Shown here in pieces: positions 2,895 through 43,975 of a DNA stretch of 64,000 bases. Both the position numbers and the translations under genes were made by a program. The notes below the pieces were generated by a model that saw only the letters and a program-made list of their open reading frames with translations, was not told the DNA's origin and did no database searches. The stretch lies in sequence record KJ019142.1; one strand, given 5' to 3'. The stretch's first letter is position 1; each line of letters opens with the position of its first letter.

Positions 2895-2968
2895 GGGTTA
2901 ATAGCTCAGCTGGACAGAGCAACGCTCTTCTAAAGCGTCGGTCGTTGGTTCGAATCCAACTTAACCCG
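2895..2968 (+). tRNA. trnR: tRNA-Arg (anticodon TCT)
   Basis: GGGTTAA/TTAACCC acceptor stem, anticodon arm ACGCT-CTTCTAA-AGCGT, GGTTCGAATCC T-arm; no encoded CCA. Confidence 0.95.
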
Positions 2969-2990
2969 TTGGGGTCTAATTAACCCCATA

Positions 2991-3175
2991 GGATGTGACA
3001 GAATGAACCGTTTGGTTAATACCGGTCATTGTATAGTAGGGAAGGCTGTGGTGGCCGCCAGAAAGACTAGGAGACTAGAGTTCTGAGAACCCATACCAGG
3101 GTCCCGAAAGTTCAGAGGTATTACTATTCTTAGTATGACCCCTCTGTTGGAGGTAAAAAGATAATCCTCCCATCC
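2991..3175 (+). ncRNA. multi-stem structured RNA candidate between the two tRNAs
   Basis: GGATG/CATCC closing helix, internal stems AATGA(A)CCG/CGGTCATT, CAGAGG/CCTCTG, GGAGG/CCTCC; no ORF. Confidence 0.55.
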
Positions 3176-3181
3176 ACCCAA

Positions 3182-3253
3182 TCCACAATAGCTCAGCGGT
3201 AGAGTCGGCGACTGTTAATCGCCTTGTCCCTGGTTCGAATCCAGGTTGTGGAG
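3182..3253 (+). tRNA. trnN: tRNA-Asn (anticodon GTT)
   Basis: TCCACAA/TTGTGGA acceptor stem, GGCGA-CTGTTAA-TCGCC anticodon arm, GGTTCGAATCC T-arm. Confidence 0.95.
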
Positions 3254-29924: not shown

Positions 29925-29950
29925 CACCACTCCTCACGGGGTGGTTTTTT
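29925..29950 (+). terminator. intrinsic terminator
   Basis: ACCACTCC/GGGGTGGT stem plus T run. Confidence 0.75.
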
Positions 29951-30300: not shown

Positions 30301-31311
30301 ATGCATGTTGTGATGAAAGCTTTAATCTCTGGAATTACAGGTCAAGATGGATCCTATCTTGCTGAACTTCTACTTAAGAAGGGGTATGAAGTCCATGGTA
30401 TTATTCGTAGAACCTCCTCGTTTAATACAGGAAGAATCGATCATATCTTCGATCAGTTACACCTCCACTACGGGGATTTGACTGACTCCCTGAACATAGT
30501 CTCTATCATTAAGGAAGTAGAACCTGATGAGATCTACAACCTAGGGGCACAGAGTCATGTGAAGGTATCATTCGAGATCCCTGAATACACTGCACAAACA
30601 GACGCTCTGGGAACTCTACGAGTATTGGAAGCAGTCCGTCTCCTAGGTATGGAGAATAGAGTTCGTATCTATCAGGCATCCACTAGTGAGTTGTATGGAT
30701 TAGTTCAGGCAGTTCCACAGAAAGAAGATACCCCATTCTATCCACGATCCCCATATGGTGTAGCGAAACTCTATGGTTACTGGATTATAAAGAACTACAG
30801 AGAGAGTTATGGGATGCACGCTAGTAGTGGTATCCTATTCAATCATGAGTCACCACGACGGGGTGAGACCTTTGTAACTCGTAAGATTACTAGGGCACTC
30901 TCTCGTATCAGTACAGGACTACAAGATGTTCTCTACCTAGGTAACCTAAACGCCAAGAGGGACTGGGGACACGCAGAGGACTTTGTAGAGGCTATGTGGT
31001 TGATGCTCCAACAGGATAAACCTGATGACTATGTGATTGCCACCGGGGAACAATACTCAGTTCGTGAATTTGTAGAGGCATCTGCTGAATACTTTGGTAT
31101 GAAGATTGAGTGGCAGGGTGAGGGATTAGATGAAGTGGGTATAGATAGATTCACTAAGAAAGTCGTTGTTCGTGTCAGCGATAAGTATTTCCGTCCAGCA
31201 GAAGTTGAGTCTCTCTGGGGAGATCCTACCAAGGCTAAAGAGGTATTAGGTTGGAAACCTAAGCATACCTTTAGTTCTTTGGTTGAAGATATGTGTATTT
31301 ACGGTCAGTGA
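30301..31311 (+). CDS. gmd: GDP-mannose 4,6-dehydratase
   Basis: [48 protein letters not shown]. Confidence 0.97.
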
Positions 31312-31313
31312 TT

Positions 31314-32240
31314 ATGAAAAAGGGTTCAACGGTAGCAGTATTTGGTTCGGGTGGATTGGCTGGAAGTGCCATCACCAGGGCACTCAGGTGTTCCTTTATG
31401 GCACATAAGATTCTTACCCCTAGGAGTAAGGAACTAGACCTAAGAGAACAGGCAGATGTTCGTAGTTGGTTTAAGGAGAACAAAGTTGATTATGTATTCT
31501 TAGCCGCCGCCCTAGTTGGTGGTATTATGGCTAACAAGACTAGAAAGGCAGAGTTCTTACACGACAACCTAATGATGCAGTGTAATGTAATTGACTCTGC
31601 ATACTATAGTGGAGTAAAGAAACTCCTATTCTTAGGTACCTCTTGTATCTATCCAGCAGGAAGACACCATCCACTAGTGGAACATGAACTACTCACAGGA
31701 CTATTAGAACCAACCAATGACGCATACGCAATCGCAAAGATCGCAGGGATCAAACAATGTGACTTCTACCGAGAACAATATGGATTTGATGCTATCTCTA
31801 TCATGCCTCCTAATCTATATGGTCCTGGAGATAATTTCAATGAGGGATCAGGACATGTCCTCGCCTCATTGATGAATAGGTTTCACCTAGCGAAGGAAGC
31901 AGGTGCATCTAGAGTTGAATGTTGGGGTGATGGATCACCTATGAGGGAGTTTCTATATGTGGATGACTTAGCAGATGCTTCCTTATACTTTATGAATAGT
32001 TATAGTGAGTCTGGGCACATTAATACTGGGACTGGTAGGGATGTAACTATCAAACAACTAGCGGAGACTATTGCTGATGTAGTTGGATACAAAGGTGAGA
32101 TAGGTTGGGATACAACTAAACCCAACGGAAACCCAAGGAAACTACTTGACAGCAGTAGGGCAAACCTGTTAGGATGGGAACCCAAGGTTAAATTTGAAGA
32201 CGGAATCAAACTCACATACAACTGGTATCTAGCACAATGA
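31314..32240 (+). CDS. fcl: GDP-L-fucose synthase / GDP-colitose synthase-like epimerase-reductase
   Basis: AALVGGIMAN, LGTSCIYP, LEPTNDAYAIAK, PPNLYGPGDNF, REFLYVDDLA. Confidence 0.95.
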   Translation: MKKGSTVAVFGSGGLAGSAITRALRCSFMAHKILTPRSKELDLREQADVRSWFKENKVDYVFLAAALVGGIMANKTRKAEFLHDNLMMQCNVIDSAYYSGVKKLLFLGTSCIYPAGRHHPLVEHELLTGLLEPTNDAYAIAKIAGIKQCDFYREQYGFDAISIMPPNLYGPGDNFNEGSGHVLASLMNRFHLAKEAGASRVECWGDGSPMREFLYVDDLADASLYFMNSYSESGHINTGTGRDVTIKQLAETIADVVGYKGEIGWDTTKPNGNPRKLLDSSRANLLGWEPKVKFEDGIKLTYNWYLAQ

Positions 32241-33430
32241 CAAAGATTACAAATGGATATACGTGGCCTCTTATGAAGGACACTGTGACCAAGAGAGATA
32301 GGTTGAGGATGGCAAAGTTTATCCTCACCAGTGATAGACTAACACAAGGTAAAGAAGTTCGTAAGTTTGAGGAGCAGTGGAGTGAGTGGCTTGGAGTTAA
32401 ACATTCTCTTTTTGTTAGCAGTGGCAGTACCGCTAACCTACTTCTTGTGTCTGCTTGGAAGGAATTATACGAGATCCCAGACCAGTCGAAAGTAATTGTA
32501 CCTGCTTGTACTTGGGTAACTAATGTTGCTCCTATCATCCAGTGTGGTTTGACTCCAATCTTTTGTGACATCAACTTAGAAGACTACTCCTTTGATCTGG
32601 ATAAACTACAGGATATTCGTGATGAATATCACGATGACATCAGAGGTATCTTTGTTACTCACCTCCTAGGATTTCCTGCTAATGTGGAAAAGTTTCGTGA
32701 TGTTTTCCCCGACGCTCATATTCTAGAAGATGTATGTGAGAGTCACGGAGCAGTCCTCCCTAGTGGTGATAAGGCGGGAACCTTTGATGTTGGTGGCACA
32801 TTTAGTTTCTACTTTGGGCACCACATGACTACCATTGAAGGTGGTATGGTGAGTACTAATGATCCAGAACTCTATGATCTAATGAGAATGAAGCGTTCTC
32901 ATGGGTTAGCGAGAGAATCACTATACTTTGAAACATACAAAGAGAAGTATCCTGATGTAAATCCACAGTTTCTCTTCGTTACTGAGGGATATAACTTCCG
33001 TAATACTGATCTAGCTGCTGTATTAGGACAGTCTCAACTGAAGAGACTAGACAGTATGATTGGGATTCGTAACAGGAACTATGAGTTATACCAACAATTA
33101 CTAAAGAAACACGAACATGACCTTACACATGAGTATGGTGGTTCTTTCTATATCCCCTCCACACAGGGGGATGTAAGTAGTTTCTGTTTTCCATTTGTAG
33201 TTGATAATATGCACTGCTATCTTAAGTTAAAAGAACTTCTAGAAGAATACTATGTTGAGTATCGACCTATTGTGAGTGGTAACCTCCTACGACAACCATT
33301 CTTGAGAGAATATTCTGCTGAGTGTCCCAAGGCAGATATAGCCCATGAAAAGGGACTATATATTGGGAATAATCACTTTGTAGATGAGTCTAACTTTCAC
33401 ATGCTAGATGAGATTTTGAGCCAACTTTGA
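32237..33430 (+). CDS. colD: PLP-dependent GDP-4-keto-6-deoxymannose 3-dehydratase (ColD-like, DegT superfamily)
   Basis: SSGSTANLL, EDVCESHGA, SFYFGHHMTTIEGG (His in the Schiff-base Lys position), RPIVSGN, GLYIGN. Confidence 0.8.
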   Translation: MTKITNGYTWPLMKDTVTKRDRLRMAKFILTSDRLTQGKEVRKFEEQWSEWLGVKHSLFVSSGSTANLLLVSAWKELYEIPDQSKVIVPACTWVTNVAPIIQCGLTPIFCDINLEDYSFDLDKLQDIRDEYHDDIRGIFVTHLLGFPANVEKFRDVFPDAHILEDVCESHGAVLPSGDKAGTFDVGGTFSFYFGHHMTTIEGGMVSTNDPELYDLMRMKRSHGLARESLYFETYKEKYPDVNPQFLFVTEGYNFRNTDLAAVLGQSQLKRLDSMIGIRNRNYELYQQLLKKHEHDLTHEYGGSFYIPSTQGDVSSFCFPFVVDNMHCYLKLKELLEEYYVEYRPIVSGNLLRQPFLREYSAECPKADIAHEKGLYIGNNHFVDESNFHMLDEILSQL

Positions 33431-33431
33431 T

Positions 33432-34226
33432 ATGACATTTTCATTTAATCATATGGGCAACTTGGGGCATCTGGGAAACCAGATGTTTCAGTATGCCGCA
33501 CTCATTGGTATGGGGGCTAAGCATGGGAGGAGTATTTGTATCCCCCATAAACAAAGTTTTGGGCAATCATACTACCAGGATCTTCGTAGTAATATCTACG
33601 ATGCTTTCAACCTCTCACCCAATGGTGTAGGTATCAGTAGGTTCCCCACAGTTCAGGAAGGTAGTTTCCACTTTGATGAAAACTTATTTGAGAACCCACC
33701 AGATGAGAACTGTAACCTCTATGGATTCTTCCAGAGTGAAAAGTGGTTCTCACATATCAAAGAAGGTATTAGGAAAGAGTTCACTCTAAAGGATGAGTAC
33801 CGGGAAGTGGCACAACTGATGAGAGAACAACTCTCTGGTCAGGTTGTTGCTATTCATGTTCGTAGAACTGACTACCTATCCAATCCAAACCACGGAGCAT
33901 TGGGTTTAGATTACTATGAGAAGGCACTGGAGTTGGTTCCTAATAACCTTACAGTAGTTGTATTCACTGATGATCCAGAGTGGGCTAAAGAACAACCACT
34001 CTTTCCAGATGATAGGTTCTTTGTATCAGAGACAGACTGTCCCTATACAGACCTTGCTCTTATGAGTATGTGTGATTATCATATTATTGCCAACAGTTCA
34101 TACTCTTGGTGGGGTGCATACTTATCTGATAGTAAGAAAGTAATTGCTCCTAAACAGTGGTTTGGGGAACCACTTAAAACAAATAACCTGAAAGATCTTT
34201 ATTGTGATGGGTGGGTGAAACTATGA
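33432..34226 (+). CDS. GT11 alpha-1,2-fucosyl/colitosyltransferase
   Basis: GHLGNQMFQYA, GFFQSEKWF, HVRRTDY, IANSSYSWWGAYL. Confidence 0.93.
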   Translation: MTFSFNHMGNLGHLGNQMFQYAALIGMGAKHGRSICIPHKQSFGQSYYQDLRSNIYDAFNLSPNGVGISRFPTVQEGSFHFDENLFENPPDENCNLYGFFQSEKWFSHIKEGIRKEFTLKDEYREVAQLMREQLSGQVVAIHVRRTDYLSNPNHGALGLDYYEKALELVPNNLTVVVFTDDPEWAKEQPLFPDDRFFVSETDCPYTDLALMSMCDYHIIANSSYSWWGAYLSDSKKVIAPKQWFGEPLKTNNLKDLYCDGWVKL

Positions 34227-34846
34227 GTAACTTTGCAAGTGCTAAACAGTTTATCAAGAATGGTATTGATACACAACAGGAGTCTATCTCTGGTGGTGGC
34301 AGCACTATGGCTTCCACAGTTGCCTTCAGATACTTCCTACCAAAGTATATCAAACAGTATGGTATTGAGAGTATCTTAGACATTGGGTGTGGTGACTGGC
34401 ATTGGATGTCTACTATCAGAGAAGAGTTTCCTGATGTAGACTATGAGGGATGGGATGCCTCTGAGGATATGATTAATCCCATGACTGAGAAGTATGGAAC
34501 AGAGAATACTAGGTTTGAGGTAAAGGATATCATTGATAACAAGTATCCCAAAGTGGATTTGGTTATCGCTCGTGATGTTCTATTCCATCTCAAAGAGGAT
34601 TACCTAAAGAAGGTTCTCAAGAATATCAGTAAGGCAGGTGTGAAGTATCTACTAGCAACCACCTTTCCAGGTTTACCTAAGAACGAAGAACTCACTCCTA
34701 AGAAATATGACGGTTGGGGATTCAGACCAATCAATCTGGATATCGAGCCTTATAATATGAAAGATTATTGTATCAATGATTTCAAGGAAACGACAGCCCC
34801 TAACAGAGGATACTATCGTCATGTCTATTTGTATGAGGTAAAATGA
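34223..34846 (+). CDS. class I SAM-dependent methyltransferase
   Basis: ILDIGCGD...GWD...DLVIARDVLFHL. Confidence 0.85.
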   Translation: MSNFASAKQFIKNGIDTQQESISGGGSTMASTVAFRYFLPKYIKQYGIESILDIGCGDWHWMSTIREEFPDVDYEGWDASEDMINPMTEKYGTENTRFEVKDIIDNKYPKVDLVIARDVLFHLKEDYLKKVLKNISKAGVKYLLATTFPGLPKNEELTPKKYDGWGFRPINLDIEPYNMKDYCINDFKETTAPNRGYYRHVYLYEVK

Positions 34847-34995
34847 AGATCGAAATTGAACTATCTAAAGATGTAGAATACAAAGGAGAGAAACTAGGTG
34901 AGTATATCTGGAACCTAGAAGAGGGAATTAATCATGTTACTGGTTTTGGTGATTCACTTGAGGAATGTTTTAAGGAAATTGTGAGGTTTAGATGA
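34843..34995 (+). CDS. small hypothetical protein (50 aa)
   Basis: coupled at both ends (ATGA overlaps); read by eye. Confidence 0.5.
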   Translation: MKIEIELSKDVEYKGEKLGEYIWNLEEGINHVTGFGDSLEECFKEIVRFR

Positions 34996-35723
34996 AGAAA
35001 GTAGCTATTATCTTTATTGGAACAGGTAGATACCTAGAGTTTCTACCAAAGTATTATGAACAGGCAGAAGCAAACCTCTTCCCTGACAGACCCAAACACT
35101 ACTATGTGTTTACTGATGGTGACTTAGGTAATGAACTACCTGACAATGTAACTGTATACGAACAGGAACATCTTCAATGGCCATACATCACCCTCTATCG
35201 TTTCGGTATTATCCAGAAACACCTAGAGGAGATTGAGAAGGAGTGTGGTTTCCTACTCTTTATGGATGCTGATACACAGGTAGTATCCCCTGTATCGTTC
35301 GATGAAGTATTCAGGAAGGGAAAACCCTATACAGGTGTTCATCACCCCTGCCACGCCCTGAATATGCCACCACACAATGAGTTTCCTGGTAGTCTAGAAA
35401 CTAATACAGCATCCAAGGCAGCATGTAAACCTGGTGATGACTTCTCTGTATATTGGCAAGGTTGTGTATGGGGTGGAAACATAAAGGGTGCTCGTAAGAT
35501 TATTGATACTCTCCACCACAGAACTAAACAAGATGAGGAGAATGGAATCATTGCCAAGTGGCATGATGAAAGTCATATCAATAGATACTTCCTTGATAAC
35601 AAAGATAAGGTGAATACCCTATCACCTAGTTTCGCATACCCAGAGTCCTTCACTGAGTATATGGAAGACTACGAACCTAAGATTGTACACCTAGCAAAAG
35701 AGAATTCTAAGTATCAGGTATGA
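34992..35723 (+). CDS. GT6 family (ABO-type alpha-1,3-Gal/GalNAc transferase)
   Basis: IGTGRY...YYVFTD...WP...FMDAD...VWGG...WHDESHINRYF. Confidence 0.9.
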   Translation: MKKVAIIFIGTGRYLEFLPKYYEQAEANLFPDRPKHYYVFTDGDLGNELPDNVTVYEQEHLQWPYITLYRFGIIQKHLEEIEKECGFLLFMDADTQVVSPVSFDEVFRKGKPYTGVHHPCHALNMPPHNEFPGSLETNTASKAACKPGDDFSVYWQGCVWGGNIKGARKIIDTLHHRTKQDEENGIIAKWHDESHINRYFLDNKDKVNTLSPSFAYPESFTEYMEDYEPKIVHLAKENSKYQV

Positions 35724-36343
35724 GTTACTTCACAGATTATGACAACGAATTCACAGTATTTGAGGCACCAAAGAACGGGGGAACTACTCTCCGTCTTTGG
35801 ATATACTACGCAGGAACAGGGGAGTTGGTGAAGTCAGCGGAGTCTGAATACTACGCTGGCACTGGAGAAACATACAAACAACTCCAAGAGTGGGGTTATG
35901 TGAATGGGGAATACGAGAACCCCAAGACCCAGATGGTATGTATCAAGAGAGACCCTGTAGATAGGTTTGTAAGTGCCTTCTATGATAAGGTAATCAAAGA
36001 GGGGAGAATCAAAGTAACCATCGATGAGTTTCTCTCAAACTATGAAGAGATACTTGATAAGTCTACCCTCAAGATGAATGATGGTAAGACTAACTTCATG
36101 AAGTTTCACTTTGAGTCACAGACATATCACTTTGGTAAAGATAGAGATCTATATCATAAGGTCTTTGATATCTCAGAGGTTGGTACTGGTCTGAAGAAGT
36201 ATCTGGAGAGTAAGTGGAATATAGAACTACCTGATGTCCATGCTAGAAATAGTGGTGGTGGTAGAAAGTTTGATCTCTCCAGGGGACAACTGAATAAGGT
36301 AAAGGAAATTTACACACAGGACTATTATAATGGGTGGTACTGA
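35720..36343 (+). CDS. sulfotransferase family 2-like protein
   Basis: PKNGGTT (5'-PSB-like), RDPVDRFVSAFYD (3'-PB-like), HFESQ. Confidence 0.8.
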   Translation: MSYFTDYDNEFTVFEAPKNGGTTLRLWIYYAGTGELVKSAESEYYAGTGETYKQLQEWGYVNGEYENPKTQMVCIKRDPVDRFVSAFYDKVIKEGRIKVTIDEFLSNYEEILDKSTLKMNDGKTNFMKFHFESQTYHFGKDRDLYHKVFDISEVGTGLKKYLESKWNIELPDVHARNSGGGRKFDLSRGQLNKVKEIYTQDYYNGWY

Positions 36344-37115
36344 AGGATATATCCTGATAGGTATTGGTGATAGGTATCTACAGATGACAGAGAACCTCAC
36401 TAAAACTCTAAAGAAACATGGAGATAATAGAGGATCCCTAACTATCACAAGATCGGATAATAGGGAACTCTATAGTGAGTGTAACACTGAGTTTGAGAGG
36501 AATGGAACTCTACCTAAGATTACCTTAGATAGATACTTACCTTTTGATCACAATATATTCCTAGATGCTGATATGTTATGTGTAGGTGATACACAACATG
36601 TATGGGATCTATTCAGGAGTAGTGATCAGTTTGTTCAACAGGTAGGATGTTTGGGAAGAGATCCTAACTTCCACGCTCACCAGTATGAGAGTGAGTTGGG
36701 TTTTGAGATTCCTAGAGTCCATGGTGGTTGTATCTACATCAATAGAGAGAAACTAGACCCAGGGTTCTTTCCCTATATGAGAGAGTGTTTCCTAAACTAT
36801 AAACAAATATTTCATAATAGTGGTCTAACCTATAAGAATAGTAGACCAGATCAACCACTATACGCTCTAGCAAATGGTATGTGGGGATTTAAACCTGTGG
36901 ATCTATACACTAACCCTATCATGACTATTGTGAATGATAGTACCCCACCCCCACTAGATAGTGTGTTCTTCAATAAGAAGAGGGGTCCTAAGTTAGATAC
37001 TCCTGTTCCCTTTGTTCATGTATTCCGTGGAGAAGAGGGTATGTCTAGGGGTTATACTAGAGGTGACCAGAAGATGTTGTTGTCCCATTATGATTACTAC
37101 CTGAACTATGAATAA
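36330..37115 (+). CDS. GT-A fold glycosyltransferase (GT8-like)
   Basis: IFLDADML DxD motif, DQP motif. Confidence 0.65.
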   Translation: MGGTEGYILIGIGDRYLQMTENLTKTLKKHGDNRGSLTITRSDNRELYSECNTEFERNGTLPKITLDRYLPFDHNIFLDADMLCVGDTQHVWDLFRSSDQFVQQVGCLGRDPNFHAHQYESELGFEIPRVHGGCIYINREKLDPGFFPYMRECFLNYKQIFHNSGLTYKNSRPDQPLYALANGMWGFKPVDLYTNPIMTIVNDSTPPPLDSVFFNKKRGPKLDTPVPFVHVFRGEEGMSRGYTRGDQKMLLSHYDYYLNYE

Positions 37116-37896
37116 AACTATATGGATGTGTTGGTTCCAGGGTTGGGATAAGGCACCAGAGATTACAGAGAAGTGTTTAGAGTCCTGGAAACACTACAAT
37201 AGTGATTGGGATATTGTTCTACTAGATGAATCCAACTACAAGGATTACATCTCCATTGATAAAGAACTACCAGGACTGAAGACAAACTATATCTCACTGG
37301 GTGATATCCTTCGTCTCTTTCTACTAAAAGAGCATGGTGGAGTATGGGCAGATGCAACTATCTTCTGCAACAAACCAGTGGATTGGGTTTTGGATTATGA
37401 GGATTCTTTCATCTTCACCAGGAAGGATAAGATGATTGCCTCTTGGTTTGTTGCTGCTCAGAAAGATTCCCATGTTGTAGATGTATGGTATAATAAGATG
37501 TTAGAGTTCTGGAAGTATCGTATGGAAAATACAGATACTTTCGAGCAACAATATGGTTGGATACACGCTTTGTTCCGTCAGTCCTACGCTCAGGATAGGG
37601 GGTTCAGGGATATTGTAGATAGTATGGATAAGATTGATTGCATGAGTGATGGTCAATCTAGAGGTAAGGGTCCGCACTTTTTTGCACCCTACAGTAAATA
37701 CTTCTACAACCCTATCAGTGACACGATAAAGAATCGTATAGACTCTAAAGTTGATCCACTATATAAGTTGTCTTACAAGGCAAACACAGACTGGAGAAGT
37801 CCAGAGAACAGGGGTATCCACCCAGCAGACCAAAAGATTATGTTGGAATATCCAACTAATAGTGAACTACATTATCTACTCAACACATTAAAATGA
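37108..37896 (+). CDS. capsular polysaccharide synthesis protein (DxD glycosyltransferase, GT32-like)
   Basis: IWMCWFQG...CLESW...DILRLFLLKEHGGVWADAT. Confidence 0.85.
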   Translation: MNKTIWMCWFQGWDKAPEITEKCLESWKHYNSDWDIVLLDESNYKDYISIDKELPGLKTNYISLGDILRLFLLKEHGGVWADATIFCNKPVDWVLDYEDSFIFTRKDKMIASWFVAAQKDSHVVDVWYNKMLEFWKYRMENTDTFEQQYGWIHALFRQSYAQDRGFRDIVDSMDKIDCMSDGQSRGKGPHFFAPYSKYFYNPISDTIKNRIDSKVDPLYKLSYKANTDWRSPENRGIHPADQKIMLEYPTNSELHYLLNTLK

Positions 37897-38798
37897 CAAA
37901 TAAATCATTGGTTACCGGTGGCGCGGGTTTCATCGGGTCACATATTGTGGACCGACTTATTACACTAGGACATCAAGTCGTAGTGATTGACAATGAATCC
38001 TCTGATGGTCATGATGAATACCATTGGAACAGAAGCGGACAAGTACAAAACCATAAGGCAGACATTCGTGACTACGATGCAATCAAACACTTGTTTGGTG
38101 GAGTCAATAATGTTTTTCACCTTGCCGCTAAAGCATCAGTACAGGCGTCAGTAGATAACCCCCTACCAACTATTGCCACACAGGTAATGGGAACCGCCAA
38201 TGTATTGGAGGCAGCACGACAATCTGGTGTGAGTAAGTTTGTATATTCCTCTACTAGTGCTTGTTATGGTAACAACAACCCCATTCCTAATGTAGAAACG
38301 ATGAGAGAAGATCCTCTCAACGCCTATGCTATTGGTAAGTTATCTGGGGAACAACTAGTTCGTGCCTATCACTACCTCTATGGTATGAAGACGGTGGCAT
38401 TCCGTTATACCAATGTGTATGGGGAGAGGGCAAGACACGTAGGACACTACGCTCCTGCTGTTAGTAAGTTCCTAAAGATGAGAGCACAGGGAGAACCTCT
38501 AACTATCTTTGGTGATGGCGCCCAACGCCGAGACTTTATTCATGTATCTGATGTAGTCAACGCTAATTGCTGTATTACCTATGAGGAACTAGAGCAGTGG
38601 GGTGAGACCTATAACATTGGTTATGGTAAGAACTGGAGTATCCAAGAGATCGCAGACTCTATCAGTCAGGAACAGATTCACCTATCTGCTCGTACTGGTG
38701 AGATGCGTGAGACGCTTGCTGATATTGGGAAGGCAAAGGCAGAGTTGATGTGGAAACCAAAGACTGACATCATGGATTGGATTAGGGTACAACTCTGA
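37893..38798 (+). CDS. NAD-dependent nucleotide-sugar epimerase/dehydratase
   Basis: TGGAGFIGSH, FHLAA, YAIGK, RYTNVYG, RDFIHVSDVV. Confidence 0.93.
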   Translation: MTNKSLVTGGAGFIGSHIVDRLITLGHQVVVIDNESSDGHDEYHWNRSGQVQNHKADIRDYDAIKHLFGGVNNVFHLAAKASVQASVDNPLPTIATQVMGTANVLEAARQSGVSKFVYSSTSACYGNNNPIPNVETMREDPLNAYAIGKLSGEQLVRAYHYLYGMKTVAFRYTNVYGERARHVGHYAPAVSKFLKMRAQGEPLTIFGDGAQRRDFIHVSDVVNANCCITYEELEQWGETYNIGYGKNWSIQEIADSISQEQIHLSARTGEMRETLADIGKAKAELMWKPKTDIMDWIRVQL

Positions 38799-39415
38799 TG
38801 CCAGTATTTCAGAAGGACAACAAGAAAGTTCTATTCATCCATGTTCCCAAGACTGCAGGAAGTTCTGTGAATAAACTCTTTGTGAATAATGGATATGAAA
38901 TGTCCTACTATTCTGAGAGTTCTAAAGATCTATACAATGGATTATGTGGACCACAACATCTGGACTCACTTCTATTGGAAGATGAGTTCCAAGATTTCTC
39001 TCAGTTTGATTATATCTTCTCTATCTTCAGAGACCCAGTAGACAGACATCTATCTGAGTTCACCTGGGCACCCTGGGGACTAATGGGTAGAAACATCTAC
39101 ACACCAGAAAGATTTGATGAGTGGTGTCCTAAGATATTCAGAGCGTATCAGGACTCACCATATAGGATGGATAATCACATTAGACCTCAACATGAGTTCT
39201 ATGTCAATGGATGTGATGTGTATGACTATGAAAATATCAATACACTCACAGAGAAACTATGTGATAAAATAGGTCTAGATAATAAAGAGATGCCATATGA
39301 AAGGTCTTCACGATATGATAGTGAGGATTATGTCATCTATGAAGATACTTACAATTGTATTACTGAATTTTACAAAGGAGACTATCAATGGCAAAAGGAT
39401 TCAGTCCTGTTGTGA
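38798..39415 (+). CDS. sulfotransferase family 2-like protein
   Basis: FIHVPKTAGSS, FRDPVDRHLSEF, HIRPQHEF. Confidence 0.85.
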   Translation: MPVFQKDNKKVLFIHVPKTAGSSVNKLFVNNGYEMSYYSESSKDLYNGLCGPQHLDSLLLEDEFQDFSQFDYIFSIFRDPVDRHLSEFTWAPWGLMGRNIYTPERFDEWCPKIFRAYQDSPYRMDNHIRPQHEFYVNGCDVYDYENINTLTEKLCDKIGLDNKEMPYERSSRYDSEDYVIYEDTYNCITEFYKGDYQWQKDSVLL

Positions 39416-40266
39416 CTAAGGATAAGAACAAGTCCCAGTTCAAACTACAGGGTGTTCCTAGGATTTACTACATCAGTTTAGATGATCATGCTCATCGTCA
39501 AGACTATATGGAGTCCCAGTTTGAAGACTGGGGCATCACTAACTTCGAAAGAATCTCTGCTCATGATGGTAGAGGTGATAATGATCTGAGTGATATTCTC
39601 AAAGGATCTTATCCAAAGATGATGAGTTCTGGTGAGGTTGGTTGTGTAACCTCTCACCTAAAGGCACTAAAACACTGGTTAGATACTACAGAGGGTGAAG
39701 AGTTTCTCCTTATGATGGAGGATGATTGTGATATCTCCACTGCTGCCCACTGGGGTTTCTCCTGGAGGGAGTTTATTGGGAATATTCCATCCCATGTAGA
39801 TTGTGTTCAGTTAGCAGTTATCAACCCATCAGAACTACATATCAAACTCCATATCAGGTTTGTGAATGATTTCTCCACTGCCTCATACCTAATCCGTAGA
39901 TCACACGCAGAGAAGTTAGTTAGACTCTATTGTAGGGGTGATAAGTATAAACTTGATAGTGATATCAAACCCAGAGCAGTTGCTGATGATCTTATCTACA
40001 ACTCTGGTGTGACTCTTGCTATGCCTCTATTTGCCTTCAAGATTGCACTAGGTTCCAGTATCCATGATGTCCATATCAATACCTTCCACAAGAGTAGTCA
40101 TGATGGTATCTGGGAGTTTTGGAAGAAAACAGCACCAACTATTGAGAACTGGAAACCATTCTTCAACTATGATGCCTATCTGGGAACCCTACCACCCAAT
40201 GTTGTGGTTCAACAATGGCAGCAAAAACAGGAATCCAAAGCAAAAGATTCAGGGGCTTCGCAATAG
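39388..40266 (+). CDS. GT25 family glycosyltransferase
   Basis: YISLDDHAHRQ...FERISAHDG...GEVGCVTSH...MEDD. Confidence 0.88.
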   Translation: MAKGFSPVVTKDKNKSQFKLQGVPRIYYISLDDHAHRQDYMESQFEDWGITNFERISAHDGRGDNDLSDILKGSYPKMMSSGEVGCVTSHLKALKHWLDTTEGEEFLLMMEDDCDISTAAHWGFSWREFIGNIPSHVDCVQLAVINPSELHIKLHIRFVNDFSTASYLIRRSHAEKLVRLYCRGDKYKLDSDIKPRAVADDLIYNSGVTLAMPLFAFKIALGSSIHDVHINTFHKSSHDGIWEFWKKTAPTIENWKPFFNYDAYLGTLPPNVVVQQWQQKQESKAKDSGASQ

Positions 40267-41084: not shown

Positions 41085-41090
41085 TATTAG

Positions 41091-41118
41091 AAGGAGGGTT
41101 TGATACCCTCCTTTTTTT
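41091..41118 (+). terminator. intrinsic terminator
   Basis: AAGGAGGGT/ACCCTCCTT plus T run. Confidence 0.8.
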
Positions 41119-43766: not shown

Positions 43767-43870
43767 GTGTGACAGCCAGCAAACTGGCACAGGGGGTTGG
43801 CACCCTGGGGAATCTGTGTTATAATAAACACATAAATAAGATATGTAAAGTTCTTATTACAACACTTCCA

Positions 43871-43975
43871 TCTAACCGAGACCTACGGGGAAGTAAAATA
43901 CGTCTCTAATACCTACACCGGAGGGTGGTGTAGGAATAATACTATCGTCAGCTCCCCCTGGCACTACTTACCCTT
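43871..43975 (+). ncRNA. PhotoRC-II-like structured RNA in the psbA leader
   Basis: GAGAC/GTCTC and CCTACACC/GGTGTAGG stems directly upstream of psbA, the known location of this motif in cyanophages. Confidence 0.7.

Follow-up and report, generated by a model that had tools for sequence, protein, structure and literature searches.

The window analysed here is a stretch of DNA of 64,000 nucleotides from sequence record KJ019142.1, and its segment between positions 30301 and 34226 carries a group of genes that we read as a putative GDP-L-colitose pathway accompanied by a candidate transferase. The segment is 100% identical to record KJ019085 of Synechococcus phage ACG-2014f (Kyanoviridae), in agreement with the cyanophage origin proposed in an initial annotation of the stretch, and 45 ACG-2014f records are at least 95% identical to it. 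The list of open reading frames (ORFs) shows a run of same-strand genes (+ strand) holding gmd, an Fcl-family gene, a DegT-family gene and a gene of glycosyltransferase family 11 (GT11):

30313-31311, + strand: gmd, predicted to make GDP-4-keto-6-deoxy-D-mannose (TIGR01472, PF16363; RefSeq start 30313)
31314-32240, + strand: extended short-chain dehydrogenase/reductase (SDR) of the Fcl family, putative GDP-4-keto-3,6-dideoxymannose 5-epimerase/4-reductase (the role of ColC), possibly still a GDP-fucose synthase (NF047922, PDB 1bsv, linkage)
32237-33430, + strand: colD, predicted pyridoxamine 5'-phosphate (PMP)-dependent GDP-4-keto-6-deoxy-D-mannose 3-dehydratase (PF01041, PDB match, tree, motif, context)
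33432-34226, + strand: GT11, candidate transferase of the alpha-1,2-fucosyl/colitosyl-transferase family (PF01531)

Neighbouring genes of this run either overlap or are separated by one or two nucleotides. The gmd stop codon TGA is followed after 2 nt by the ATG of fcl, fcl and colD overlap in ATGA, the TGA of colD is followed after 1 nt by the ATG of GT11, and GT11 overlaps in ATGA with the start of a methyltransferase gene. The coupling of gmd-fcl-colD-GT11 is real, and the placement of the four genes in one operon by the initial annotation has been borne out. The interval 30301-34226 which it had assigned to them does contain the four genes, but its first position is an alternative in-frame gmd ATG, four codons 5' of the RefSeq start, and the glycan cluster extends to about 40266, well beyond 34226.

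Colitose is 3-deoxy-fucose, a sugar known from few O-antigens of Gram-negative bacteria. The pathway to GDP-L-colitose is known from E. coli O55/O111, Yersinia pseudotuberculosis and Vibrio cholerae O139, and is comprised of Gmd, ColD (WbdK/ColA) and ColC (WbdJ/ColB), with WbgN as the GT11 transferase. The phage genes had been described as a complete version of this pathway; the Gmd and ColD parts of that description stand, while the colitose-synthase step is assigned from gene linkage, and GDP-fucose could be made by the same set as well. Judged by sequence, the Gmd step is not in doubt, and the protein is a bona fide equivalog, as had been proposed. It is matched in full length by TIGR01472 with 559 bits (cut-off 415) and by PF16363 with 507 bits, and shares 63-65% identity with Gmd of E. 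coli.

The product of the third gene matches PF01041 with 202 bits over residues 20-375, which identifies it as a fold-type I enzyme of the DegT/DnrJ/EryC1 family, dependent on pyridoxal 5'-phosphate or PMP. One common fold is shared by ColD, the 3-dehydrase E1 (RfbH/DdhC) and aminotransferases. The motifs SSGSTANLL, SFYFGHHMTTIEGG and RPIVSGN, singled out in the initial annotation, are all present in the translation, and the residues at their core do not vary among eight phage relatives with identities of 58-70%; among the eight sequences, 118 positions are invariant. In the PDB, chains of ColD from E. coli O55 supply the four top matches (best 2gms, 176 bits, 8e-51); lower scores follow for E1 (107 bits) and perosamine synthase (94 bits). 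Aligned by HMMER with ColD of E. coli O55, the GHH motif has its first His at the position where two point-mutant chains, 3b8x and 2r0t (which we take to be H188N and H188K), carry N or K, in accordance with the His reported in place of the Schiff-base Lys of aminotransferases. This active-site His is present in the eight phage relatives and throughout the ColD clade. Overall identity amounts to 32% with E. coli ColD and 28% with E. coli O157 PerA.

A phylogeny against ColD, RfbH/E1 and PerA, which the initial annotation had suggested as a check, was constructed in IQ-TREE under LG+C20 from 54 family members. E. coli O55 sequences used for comparison (ColD, ColC, WbgN, Gmd and Fcl) came from strain CB9615, and the Yersinia E1 sequence from a printed PDB alignment. 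The 3-dehydrases are split from Lys-bearing aminotransferases at 100/99. The window protein and all its cellular relatives lie together with E. coli ColD in a ColD clade of 43 rows (99/95), outside a separate E1 clade supported at 97/94. Sequence differences in the alignment follow the same division: rows of the ColD clade all have GHH or SHH without an insert, the three E1-clade rows have PAHH and a Cys-rich insert, and aminotransferases keep Lys. The Cys-rich insert of E1, of the S-H68 protein and of the second copy in contig L032 is absent from the window ColD, in which the only invariant Cys residues are C91 and C167.

The His substitution had been presented as the mark of a ColD-type enzyme, and this part of the initial annotation has to be amended. 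E1 and SpnQ also have His for Lys, and they resemble the window protein in fold, in the use of PMP and in C3 deoxygenation of a nucleoside diphosphate (NDP)-4-keto-6-deoxyhexose (PMC8987622). They are set apart from ColD by a [2Fe-2S] cluster (four Cys) and by the need for a reductase partner (PMC8987622), while the window protein lacks the Cys motif, belongs to the sister clade and is encoded beside gmd. The ColD assignment is accordingly drawn from the missing iron-sulfur (Fe-S) Cys insert, the tree and the gmd linkage, and not from the His alone.

Gene context was surveyed in cellular and viral relatives. Within 3.5 kb, gmd (counted at 45% identity or more) and/or an Fcl homologue is present in 26 out of 36 cellular ColD-clade loci, 12 of them with a true gmd and an Fcl homologue, 9 with gmd and 5 with an Fcl homologue; six of the ten loci with neither neighbour are close to a contig end. 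For viruses, the best 80 of 478 IMG/VR matches were screened, with Fcl homologues counted at 26% identity or more. Among these 80 loci, 46 carry gmd, fcl and colD, mostly ordered gmd-fcl-colD, 16 carry gmd and colD without an Fcl homologue, and gmd is situated at most 4 kb from colD in 62. Because of the translational coupling to a true gmd, together with gmd/fcl neighbours in relatives, the substrate is predicted to be a GDP-sugar. The call of the DegT-family protein as a ColD-type GDP-4-keto-6-deoxymannose 3-dehydratase, made already in the initial annotation, is firm, and its catalysis is predicted.

Two features of the window colD concern its variation. An 8-residue insertion, DLTHEYGG, is carried by the window protein and is absent from seven aligned relatives. 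In addition, over the greater part of gmd and fcl, IMG/VR contig L060 is about 98-100% identical to the window, and identity over GT11 is mostly 90-99%, while window positions 32597-33396, the C-terminal half of colD, align in patches of 56-89% identity (82% for the protein). Judging from this pattern, the difference is a mosaic allele inside one phage population.

Genes of the E1 type were also observed in viruses. Synechococcus phage S-H68 (L058 4842-6137), as well as S-B43, RB11-B and RN05-S, encodes an E1-like 3-dehydrase with a Cys-rich Fe-S insert. This gene is not positioned beside gmd; enzymes of dTDP- and UDP-sugars are annotated around it. It seems that the S-H68-type genes provide another viral route to 3-deoxy sugars, independent of the first.

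The Fcl-like protein has the E. coli GDP-fucose synthetase 1bsv as its best PDB match (2e-91), and is the sole Fcl-family reductase of the cluster in Pfam and NCBIfam scans. In E. coli Fcl numbering, equivalents of Cys109, Tyr136, Lys140 and His179 are kept and Ser107 is replaced by Thr, i.e. the Ser/Thr-Tyr-Lys triad and the Cys/His pair are present. The gene is joined to colD by the ATGA overlap, and colC and colD of E. coli O55 CB9615 have the same order with a 4-bp overlap. In the trees, the window protein belongs to a fully supported phage clade in which every member is colD-linked. This clade sits inside the cyanophage Fcl group, beside proteins of P-SSM2, S-SKS1, S-SRM01, S-SCSM1 and DSL-LC03, in which colD is not present. 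Across the family, Fcl homologues linked to colD are of polyphyletic origin: their distribution requires at least 7 state changes. On phylogenetic grounds, the Fcl-like protein is a cyanophage Fcl with an acquired ColD neighbour and not an orthologue of ColC.

Compared with colD-less cyanophages, Fcl proteins of the ACG-2014f/S-CAM7 group are 51-63% identical and have Thr for the catalytic Ser. Identity of Fcl drops from 65% among colD-less cyanophages to 55% when colD-carrying phages are compared with them, while the corresponding values for Gmd are 77% and 76%; Fcl is thus more diverged than expected relative to the co-located Gmd, which we consider a sign of adaptation. Thr at the Ser107 position was found in 20 of 55 colD-linked viral Fcl sequences and in none of the 60 colD-less ones. 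Two colD-linked viral clades, one of them that of the window, have this Thr, and Ser occupies this position in 95% of 117 family representatives. In the window protein the residue is Thr109, with its codon at about 31638-31640. The colitose-synthase role of the protein is a weaker proposal than the ColD call; linkage suggests it, and co-production of GDP-fucose is possible.

GT11 matches PF01531 with 99 bits (gathering threshold 23.9) over profile positions 38-296 of 298, and is 32% identical to E. coli O55 WbgN. WbgN and human FUT2 each take both GDP-colitose (GDP-Col) and GDP-fucose (GDP-Fuc) (PMC11987014; PMC12723683), and for this reason the donor of the phage enzyme is not readable from sequence and would be decided by the donor pool. 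The initial annotation was thus right about the presence of a GT11 transferase, but not in using the family as an indicator of the installed sugar. The window GT11 falls in a clade of 14 rows from colD-carrying loci (support 92, not starred), some of them with an Fcl from elsewhere, which hints at a colD+GT11 cassette. GT11 phylogeny was rejected as a donor predictor, as other colD-carrying loci use GT11 of other clades.

The cluster continues beyond GT11 on the same strand. The following features complete it, together with one site at its 5' side:

29926-29945, + strand: terminator-like hairpin and T-run, 5' of the cluster (consensus scan only: 8-bp stem, 5 GC pairs, then TTTTTATT)
34223-34846, + strand: S-adenosylmethionine-dependent methyltransferase, possible sugar O-methylation (Methyltransf_12/25/31 matches; RefSeq coordinates; start overlaps the GT11 stop)
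34992-35723, + strand: glycosyltransferase of family 6 (GT6; ABO/BoGT6a family) with a DXD motif (PF03414 76 bits; NF041524 174 bits)
35720-36343, + strand: sulfotransferase-like protein (PF03567 Sulfotransfer_2, 29 bits)
36330-37115, + strand: conserved protein with no Pfam/NCBIfam match (homologues in the same cluster of related phage contigs)
37108-37896, + strand: Caps_synth / DXD sugar-binding glycosyltransferase (PF05704 141 bits; PF04488 35 bits)
37893-38798, + strand: GalE-like SDR of the NDP-sugar 4-epimerase type (PF01370 211 bits; TIGR01179 galE 176 bits, below the cut-off of 262)
38798-39415, + strand: second sulfotransferase-like protein (RefSeq 'Galactose-3-O-sulfotransferase'; weak PF03567 in the L006 homologue)
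39388-40266, + strand: GT25-family glycosyltransferase, the final glycan gene (PF01755 in the L006 homologue; RefSeq 'glucosyltransferase')

GT6 is located about 0.8 kb 3' of GT11 in the same coupled cluster, with the methyltransferase and a small ORF between them. Its best PDB match is BoGT6a (2e-27), and human ABO transferases match at about 1e-16. The FMDADT stretch of the phage protein is aligned to the N-X-N stretch of BoGT6a; unlike most bacterial GT6, phage GT6 retains DXD, which predicts metal dependence, and a P-SSM2 GT6 with the DXD motif has already been noted (PMC3516806). Characterised relatives of the phage GT6 require a fucosyl-galactose acceptor (PMC3516806). The predicted activity is alpha-1,3-transfer of galactose (Gal) or N-acetylgalactosamine (GalNAc) onto the (Fuc/Col)-alpha-1,2-Gal formed by GT11. 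The GalE-like SDR could supply UDP-Gal/GalNAc for GT6 and is the only other candidate 4-reductase of the cluster. The GT25-family protein is 66-71% identical in related phage contigs. In the S-CAM7 version of the cluster an adenylylsulfate kinase is encoded (L051 12639-13208); this gene and the two sulfotransferase-like genes suggest a sulfated phage glycan. No wzx/wzy, manB/manC or initiating transferase was identified in the cluster by the ORF list, Pfam matches and RefSeq annotation.

In the proposed pathway, host GDP-mannose would be diverted by the phage into a 3,6-dideoxy sugar. Gmd would oxidise and dehydrate GDP-mannose to GDP-4-keto-6-deoxy-D-mannose. By analogy with characterised ColD, the active-site His of the phage enzyme would then take the C4' proton of the PMP-sugar adduct, with expulsion of the 3-OH, and hydrolysis would yield GDP-4-keto-3,6-dideoxy-D-mannose, PMP being regenerated by glutamate. 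The Fcl-family SDR, placed at this step by its linkage, would form GDP-L-colitose through epimerisation of C5 and NAD(P)H-dependent reduction of C4. The same enzyme probably still converts GDP-4-keto-6-deoxymannose into GDP-L-fucose, so that the ColD/Fcl flux ratio would set the Col:Fuc mix. GT11 would add the available sugar, Col or Fuc, in alpha-1,2 linkage to a beta-galactoside, GT6 would attach an ABO-like alpha-1,3-Gal/GalNAc branch, and the GalE-like epimerase, the methyltransferase, the sulfotransferase-like proteins and further glycosyltransferases would contribute to elaboration. Since GT11 is closely followed by GT6, an ABO-like trisaccharide is predicted, in which ColD would replace fucose partly or wholly by colitose. 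The product would be a 3-deoxy-fucose analogue of a histo-blood-group-like determinant, with the host envelope or a phage protein as a possible acceptor. As to its origin, the operon would have arisen by addition of colD, perhaps with GT11, to an older cyanophage fucosylation module of the type gmd-fcl-GT11(-GT6).

A GDP-colitose pathway leading from GDP-mannose to GDP-L-colitose, followed by transfer by GT11, is the best-supported reading of the operon and on balance a probable one, with the reductase step putative. Installation of colitose would additionally depend on the nucleotide-sugar pool. A ColD with an unreducible product would merely drain the fucose pathway, an argument for Fcl processing the 3-deoxy ketone. 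The most economical explanation would be that Fcl enzymes tolerate the absent 3-OH, some lineages perhaps being tuned further, and a mixture of GDP-colitose and GDP-fucose is the likely output.

This reading has to be weighed against other explanations, two of which concern the DegT-family protein itself. Database names favour an E1/RfbH-type CDP-4-keto-6-deoxy-D-glucose 3-dehydrase serving a CDP-linked pathway of the abequose/paratose/tyvelose type: 'CDP-4-keto-6-deoxy-D-glucose-3-dehydrase' is used in GenBank (S-CAM7) and JGI, RfbH (NF011936) is the best NCBIfam match, and E1 also has the His. However, the RfbH score of 183 bits does not reach the equivalog cut-off of 423, the PDB match to E1 is well below that to ColD, the tree position is outside the E1 clade, the Cys-rich Fe-S insert is missing and gmd is the neighbour. 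Furthermore, no CDP-glucose 4,6-dehydratase was present among ten scanned proteins, and no cytidylyltransferase or E3 reductase among the annotated cluster genes. This explanation was rejected on score, tree, Fe-S motif and gene context, and is the least credible of those considered. A sugar aminotransferase, for example one forming GDP-perosamine from the Gmd product, would agree with the RefSeq name 'aminotransferase', with the DegT/DnrJ/EryC1 family and with the substrate of PerA, which is the same. True aminotransferases keep the Schiff-base Lys, for which the window protein and its whole clade have His, the Lys-bearing enzymes are separated in the tree, identity to PerA is low, and ColD and E1 have no transaminase activity under conditions where SpnQ shows it (PMC8987622). 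It was likewise rejected, on the active-site His and the tree position, and we regard it as very improbable.

The remaining two explanations accept ColD and concern the fate of its product. The operon may essentially be a GDP-L-fucose pathway feeding GT11, as in cyanophages of the P-SSM2 type, with fucose installed and ColD acting as a side branch, as a dead end or in the service of another acceptor or reductase. The nesting of the Fcl-like protein among cyanophage Fcl and its closeness to E. coli Fcl are in line with this, as are the intact catalytic residues for 3,5-epimerisation and reduction, the commonness of colD-less gmd-fcl-GT11-GT6 modules (among 80 proteins closely related to P-SSM2 Fcl, 62 are without colD), and the fucosyl-Gal requirement of characterised GT6 relatives (PMC3516806). 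Yet colD is conserved, as its invariant positions testify, its translation is coupled to fcl on one side and to GT11 on the other, and dozens of diverged viral contigs keep it beside gmd and an fcl that is the sole Fcl-family partner. A dead-end dehydratase using up the substrate of Fcl would be costly, and the excess divergence of Fcl and the change in its catalytic triad in the window clade also speak against it, so we hold this explanation to be unlikely. Alternatively, another reductase, such as the GalE-like SDR at 37893-38798, could reduce the ColD product without C5 epimerisation, giving a D-series 3,6-dideoxyhexose while Fcl makes GDP-fucose in parallel. That SDR is kept in related colD-carrying phages (64-87% identity where present), and viral contigs with gmd-colD-SDR indicate that ColD can pair with reductases that are neither Fcl nor ColC. 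On the other hand, the protein scores best as a GalE/UDP-sugar 4-epimerase (176 bits, compared with 83 bits for the Fcl model), similar SDRs adjoin GT6 in colD-less phage modules, which fits UDP-Gal/GalNAc supply, and its gene is 4.5 kb from colD, while the Fcl-like gene overlaps colD. Such a route appears improbable.

Several observations weigh against the colitose pathway as the reading of the operon, and they concern mainly its reductase. In sequence, the Fcl-like protein is nearer to E. coli Fcl (49-52% identity) than to E. coli O55 ColC (38%), two enzymes that share 39-40% identity. In NF047922 (cut-off 500) it scores 420 bits, compared with up to 422 in S-CAM7, 444-474 in colD-less cyanophage Fcl, 551 in E. 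coli Fcl and 304 in ColC. Monophyly of the window clade with E. coli ColC is rejected by the approximately unbiased (AU) test (p 0.0003), the group having been named after the first tree was seen. ColC orthology was rejected on these identity values and this test; of the initial designation of the gene as ColC, membership in the Fcl family and the linkage to colD are what stands. The Thr107 signal is incomplete, with six origins of which four are colD-linked, and the independent-pairs test had four usable pairs and no power. The window clade differs at positions 107, 113, 182 and 287 (E. coli Fcl numbering), of which 182 and 287 are variable across Fcl at large. With this variability and the six Thr107 origins, a diagnostic residue signature of colD-linked Fcl was rejected, Thr107 being a lead and not a marker. 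Fcl proteins 86% identical to each other are found with colD (L091) and without it (L203). Furthermore, gmd-fcl-GT11-GT6 modules occur without colD, which implies a fucoside as the ancestral product. It is thus possible that the reductase is a normal fucose synthase, in which case colitose would make up only part of the product, or be missing from it if Fcl rejects the 3-deoxy ketone.

The same pair of contigs bears on how colD is gained or lost. In L091 (with colD) and L203 (without colD) gmd and fcl are 83-86% identical, and the downstream GT11/GT6 differ too; a clean "empty site" was thus rejected in favour of a cassette swap over simple insertion. A wider proposal, which we put forward only tentatively, is that ColD alone may turn the GDP-fucose pathway into a GDP-colitose pathway, the ordinary Fcl accepting the 3-deoxy ketone, and that a mobile colD(+GT11) cassette would lead phage lineages to display either a Fuc- or a Col-bearing ABO-like trisaccharide on the cell or virion. 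If true, this would represent a virus-driven switch of surface epitopes, and a 3,6-dideoxyhexose would for the first time be made by a viral route.

Compared with the E. coli O55-type colitose pathway, the window has the same three enzyme families and GT11. The two ColD proteins belong to one clade, have the active-site His and the cofactor motifs SSGS and D-x-C-E in common, and are both devoid of an Fe-S insert; the loci are alike in the colC-colD order. Differences lie in the low identity of the window ColD (32%), in the reductase, which is of the cyanophage Fcl lineage and not a ColC orthologue, and in the setting: the window genes are in a lytic T4-like cyanophage and not in an O-antigen locus, and GT6, sulfotransferase-like and methyltransferase genes are added. 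The GDP-fucose or 'LPS' (lipopolysaccharide) modules of P-SSM2, S-SKS1, S-SRM01, S-SCSM1 and DSL-LC03 share with the window the gene order and a Gmd of 75-79% identity, and in some the genomic setting is similar. Four of these five isolates have GT11, and many related contigs of IMG/VR have GT6, whereas ACG-2014f, S-CAM7 and relatives have colD between fcl and GT11. Histo-blood-group synthesis in bacteria and human, with examples in E. coli O86 (WbnK/WbnI), Bacteroides ovatus (BoGT6a) and human (FUT2 and ABO), pairs an alpha-1,2-fucosyltransferase of GT11 with an alpha-1,3-Gal/GalNAc transferase of GT6, and both families are encoded close together in the phage cluster; a difference is that the phage GT11 may use GDP-colitose as a donor.

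IMG/VR contains 478 contigs in which a relative of the ColD-like protein is encoded, and the module is common among viral contigs. The top 120 protein-database relatives range from 99% down to 56% identity; contigs of four of them were inspected, all four being phage-like and three ordered gmd-fcl-colD-GT11-GT6. No cyanobacterial genome was found among the 36 cellular matches in a scan by two exact motifs, which was not exhaustive. Public names of the colD gene are 'hypothetical protein', 'aminotransferase' and 'putative CDP-4-keto-6-deoxy-D-glucose-3-dehydrase'; the S-CAM7 homologue in GenBank is already flagged as a 3-dehydrase, with the wrong nucleotide (CDP). Full-text literature searches disclosed no paper that ties colitose to cyanophages or describes a phage-encoded colitose pathway, and the S-SCSM1 paper covers GDP-fucose genes only. 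The initial remark that such a sugar was not known to be described in a cyanophage agrees with these searches; the gene module itself is widespread in deposited viral contigs. What would be new is a known bacterial pathway in a virus, built on a reductase of the fucose pathway.

Related arrangements were observed in other viral sequences. In the uncultured 642-kb phage LR756502 (L053 7001-9097), an Fcl homologue directly precedes a ColD-clade gene, showing that the pairing is not confined to cyanomyoviruses. IMG/VR contigs L086, L093, L102, L105, L106, L108, L113, L116, L117, L119 and L123 have gmd directly followed by colD and then by a distant SDR. This SDR is 24-25% identical to the window Fcl-like protein and was rejected as ColC, being neither Fcl-like nor ColC-like; these contigs may specify a different 3,6-dideoxyhexose. 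In phage contigs L002-L005, which carry P0111, a ColD of 58% identity is encoded beside a fused protein of the cytidylyltransferase-like/mannose-6-phosphate-isomerase type, with unusual glycosyltransferase families (GT17, CAP59) nearby and gmd 5-6 kb off on the opposite strand.

If the proposed pathway is true, marine cyanophages and hundreds of other viral contigs would convert a fucosylated glycan to its 3-deoxy form during infection, with possible effects on receptor masking, superinfection exclusion, and lectin or grazer recognition, and an entire gene family would have to be re-annotated in public databases. The general question whether GDP-fucose synthases are also colitose synthases is thereby made testable: the enzymes are small and soluble, and S-CAM7 and ACG-2014f isolates are culturable on Synechococcus WH7803.

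Regulatory and RNA elements were searched for in addition. Terminator-like hairpins at 29926-29945 and 41089-41115 flank a stretch that contains the whole glycan cluster together with hli and ferredoxin genes, and 18 terminator-like sites were counted in the region, compared with 7.5 in shuffled sequence. The first hairpin is a possible 5' boundary of the transcription unit, a consensus scan not being evidence of function. Promoter-like sites were no commoner than in shuffled sequence, and an Rfam search revealed no RNA element within the operon or directly upstream. Elsewhere in the window, a manA RNA motif (RF01745, 90 bits) is located at 2895-3253 between two tRNA genes, and a PhotoRC-II RNA motif (RF01717, 69 bits) at 43852-43947, near the psbA annotation of the reference genome.

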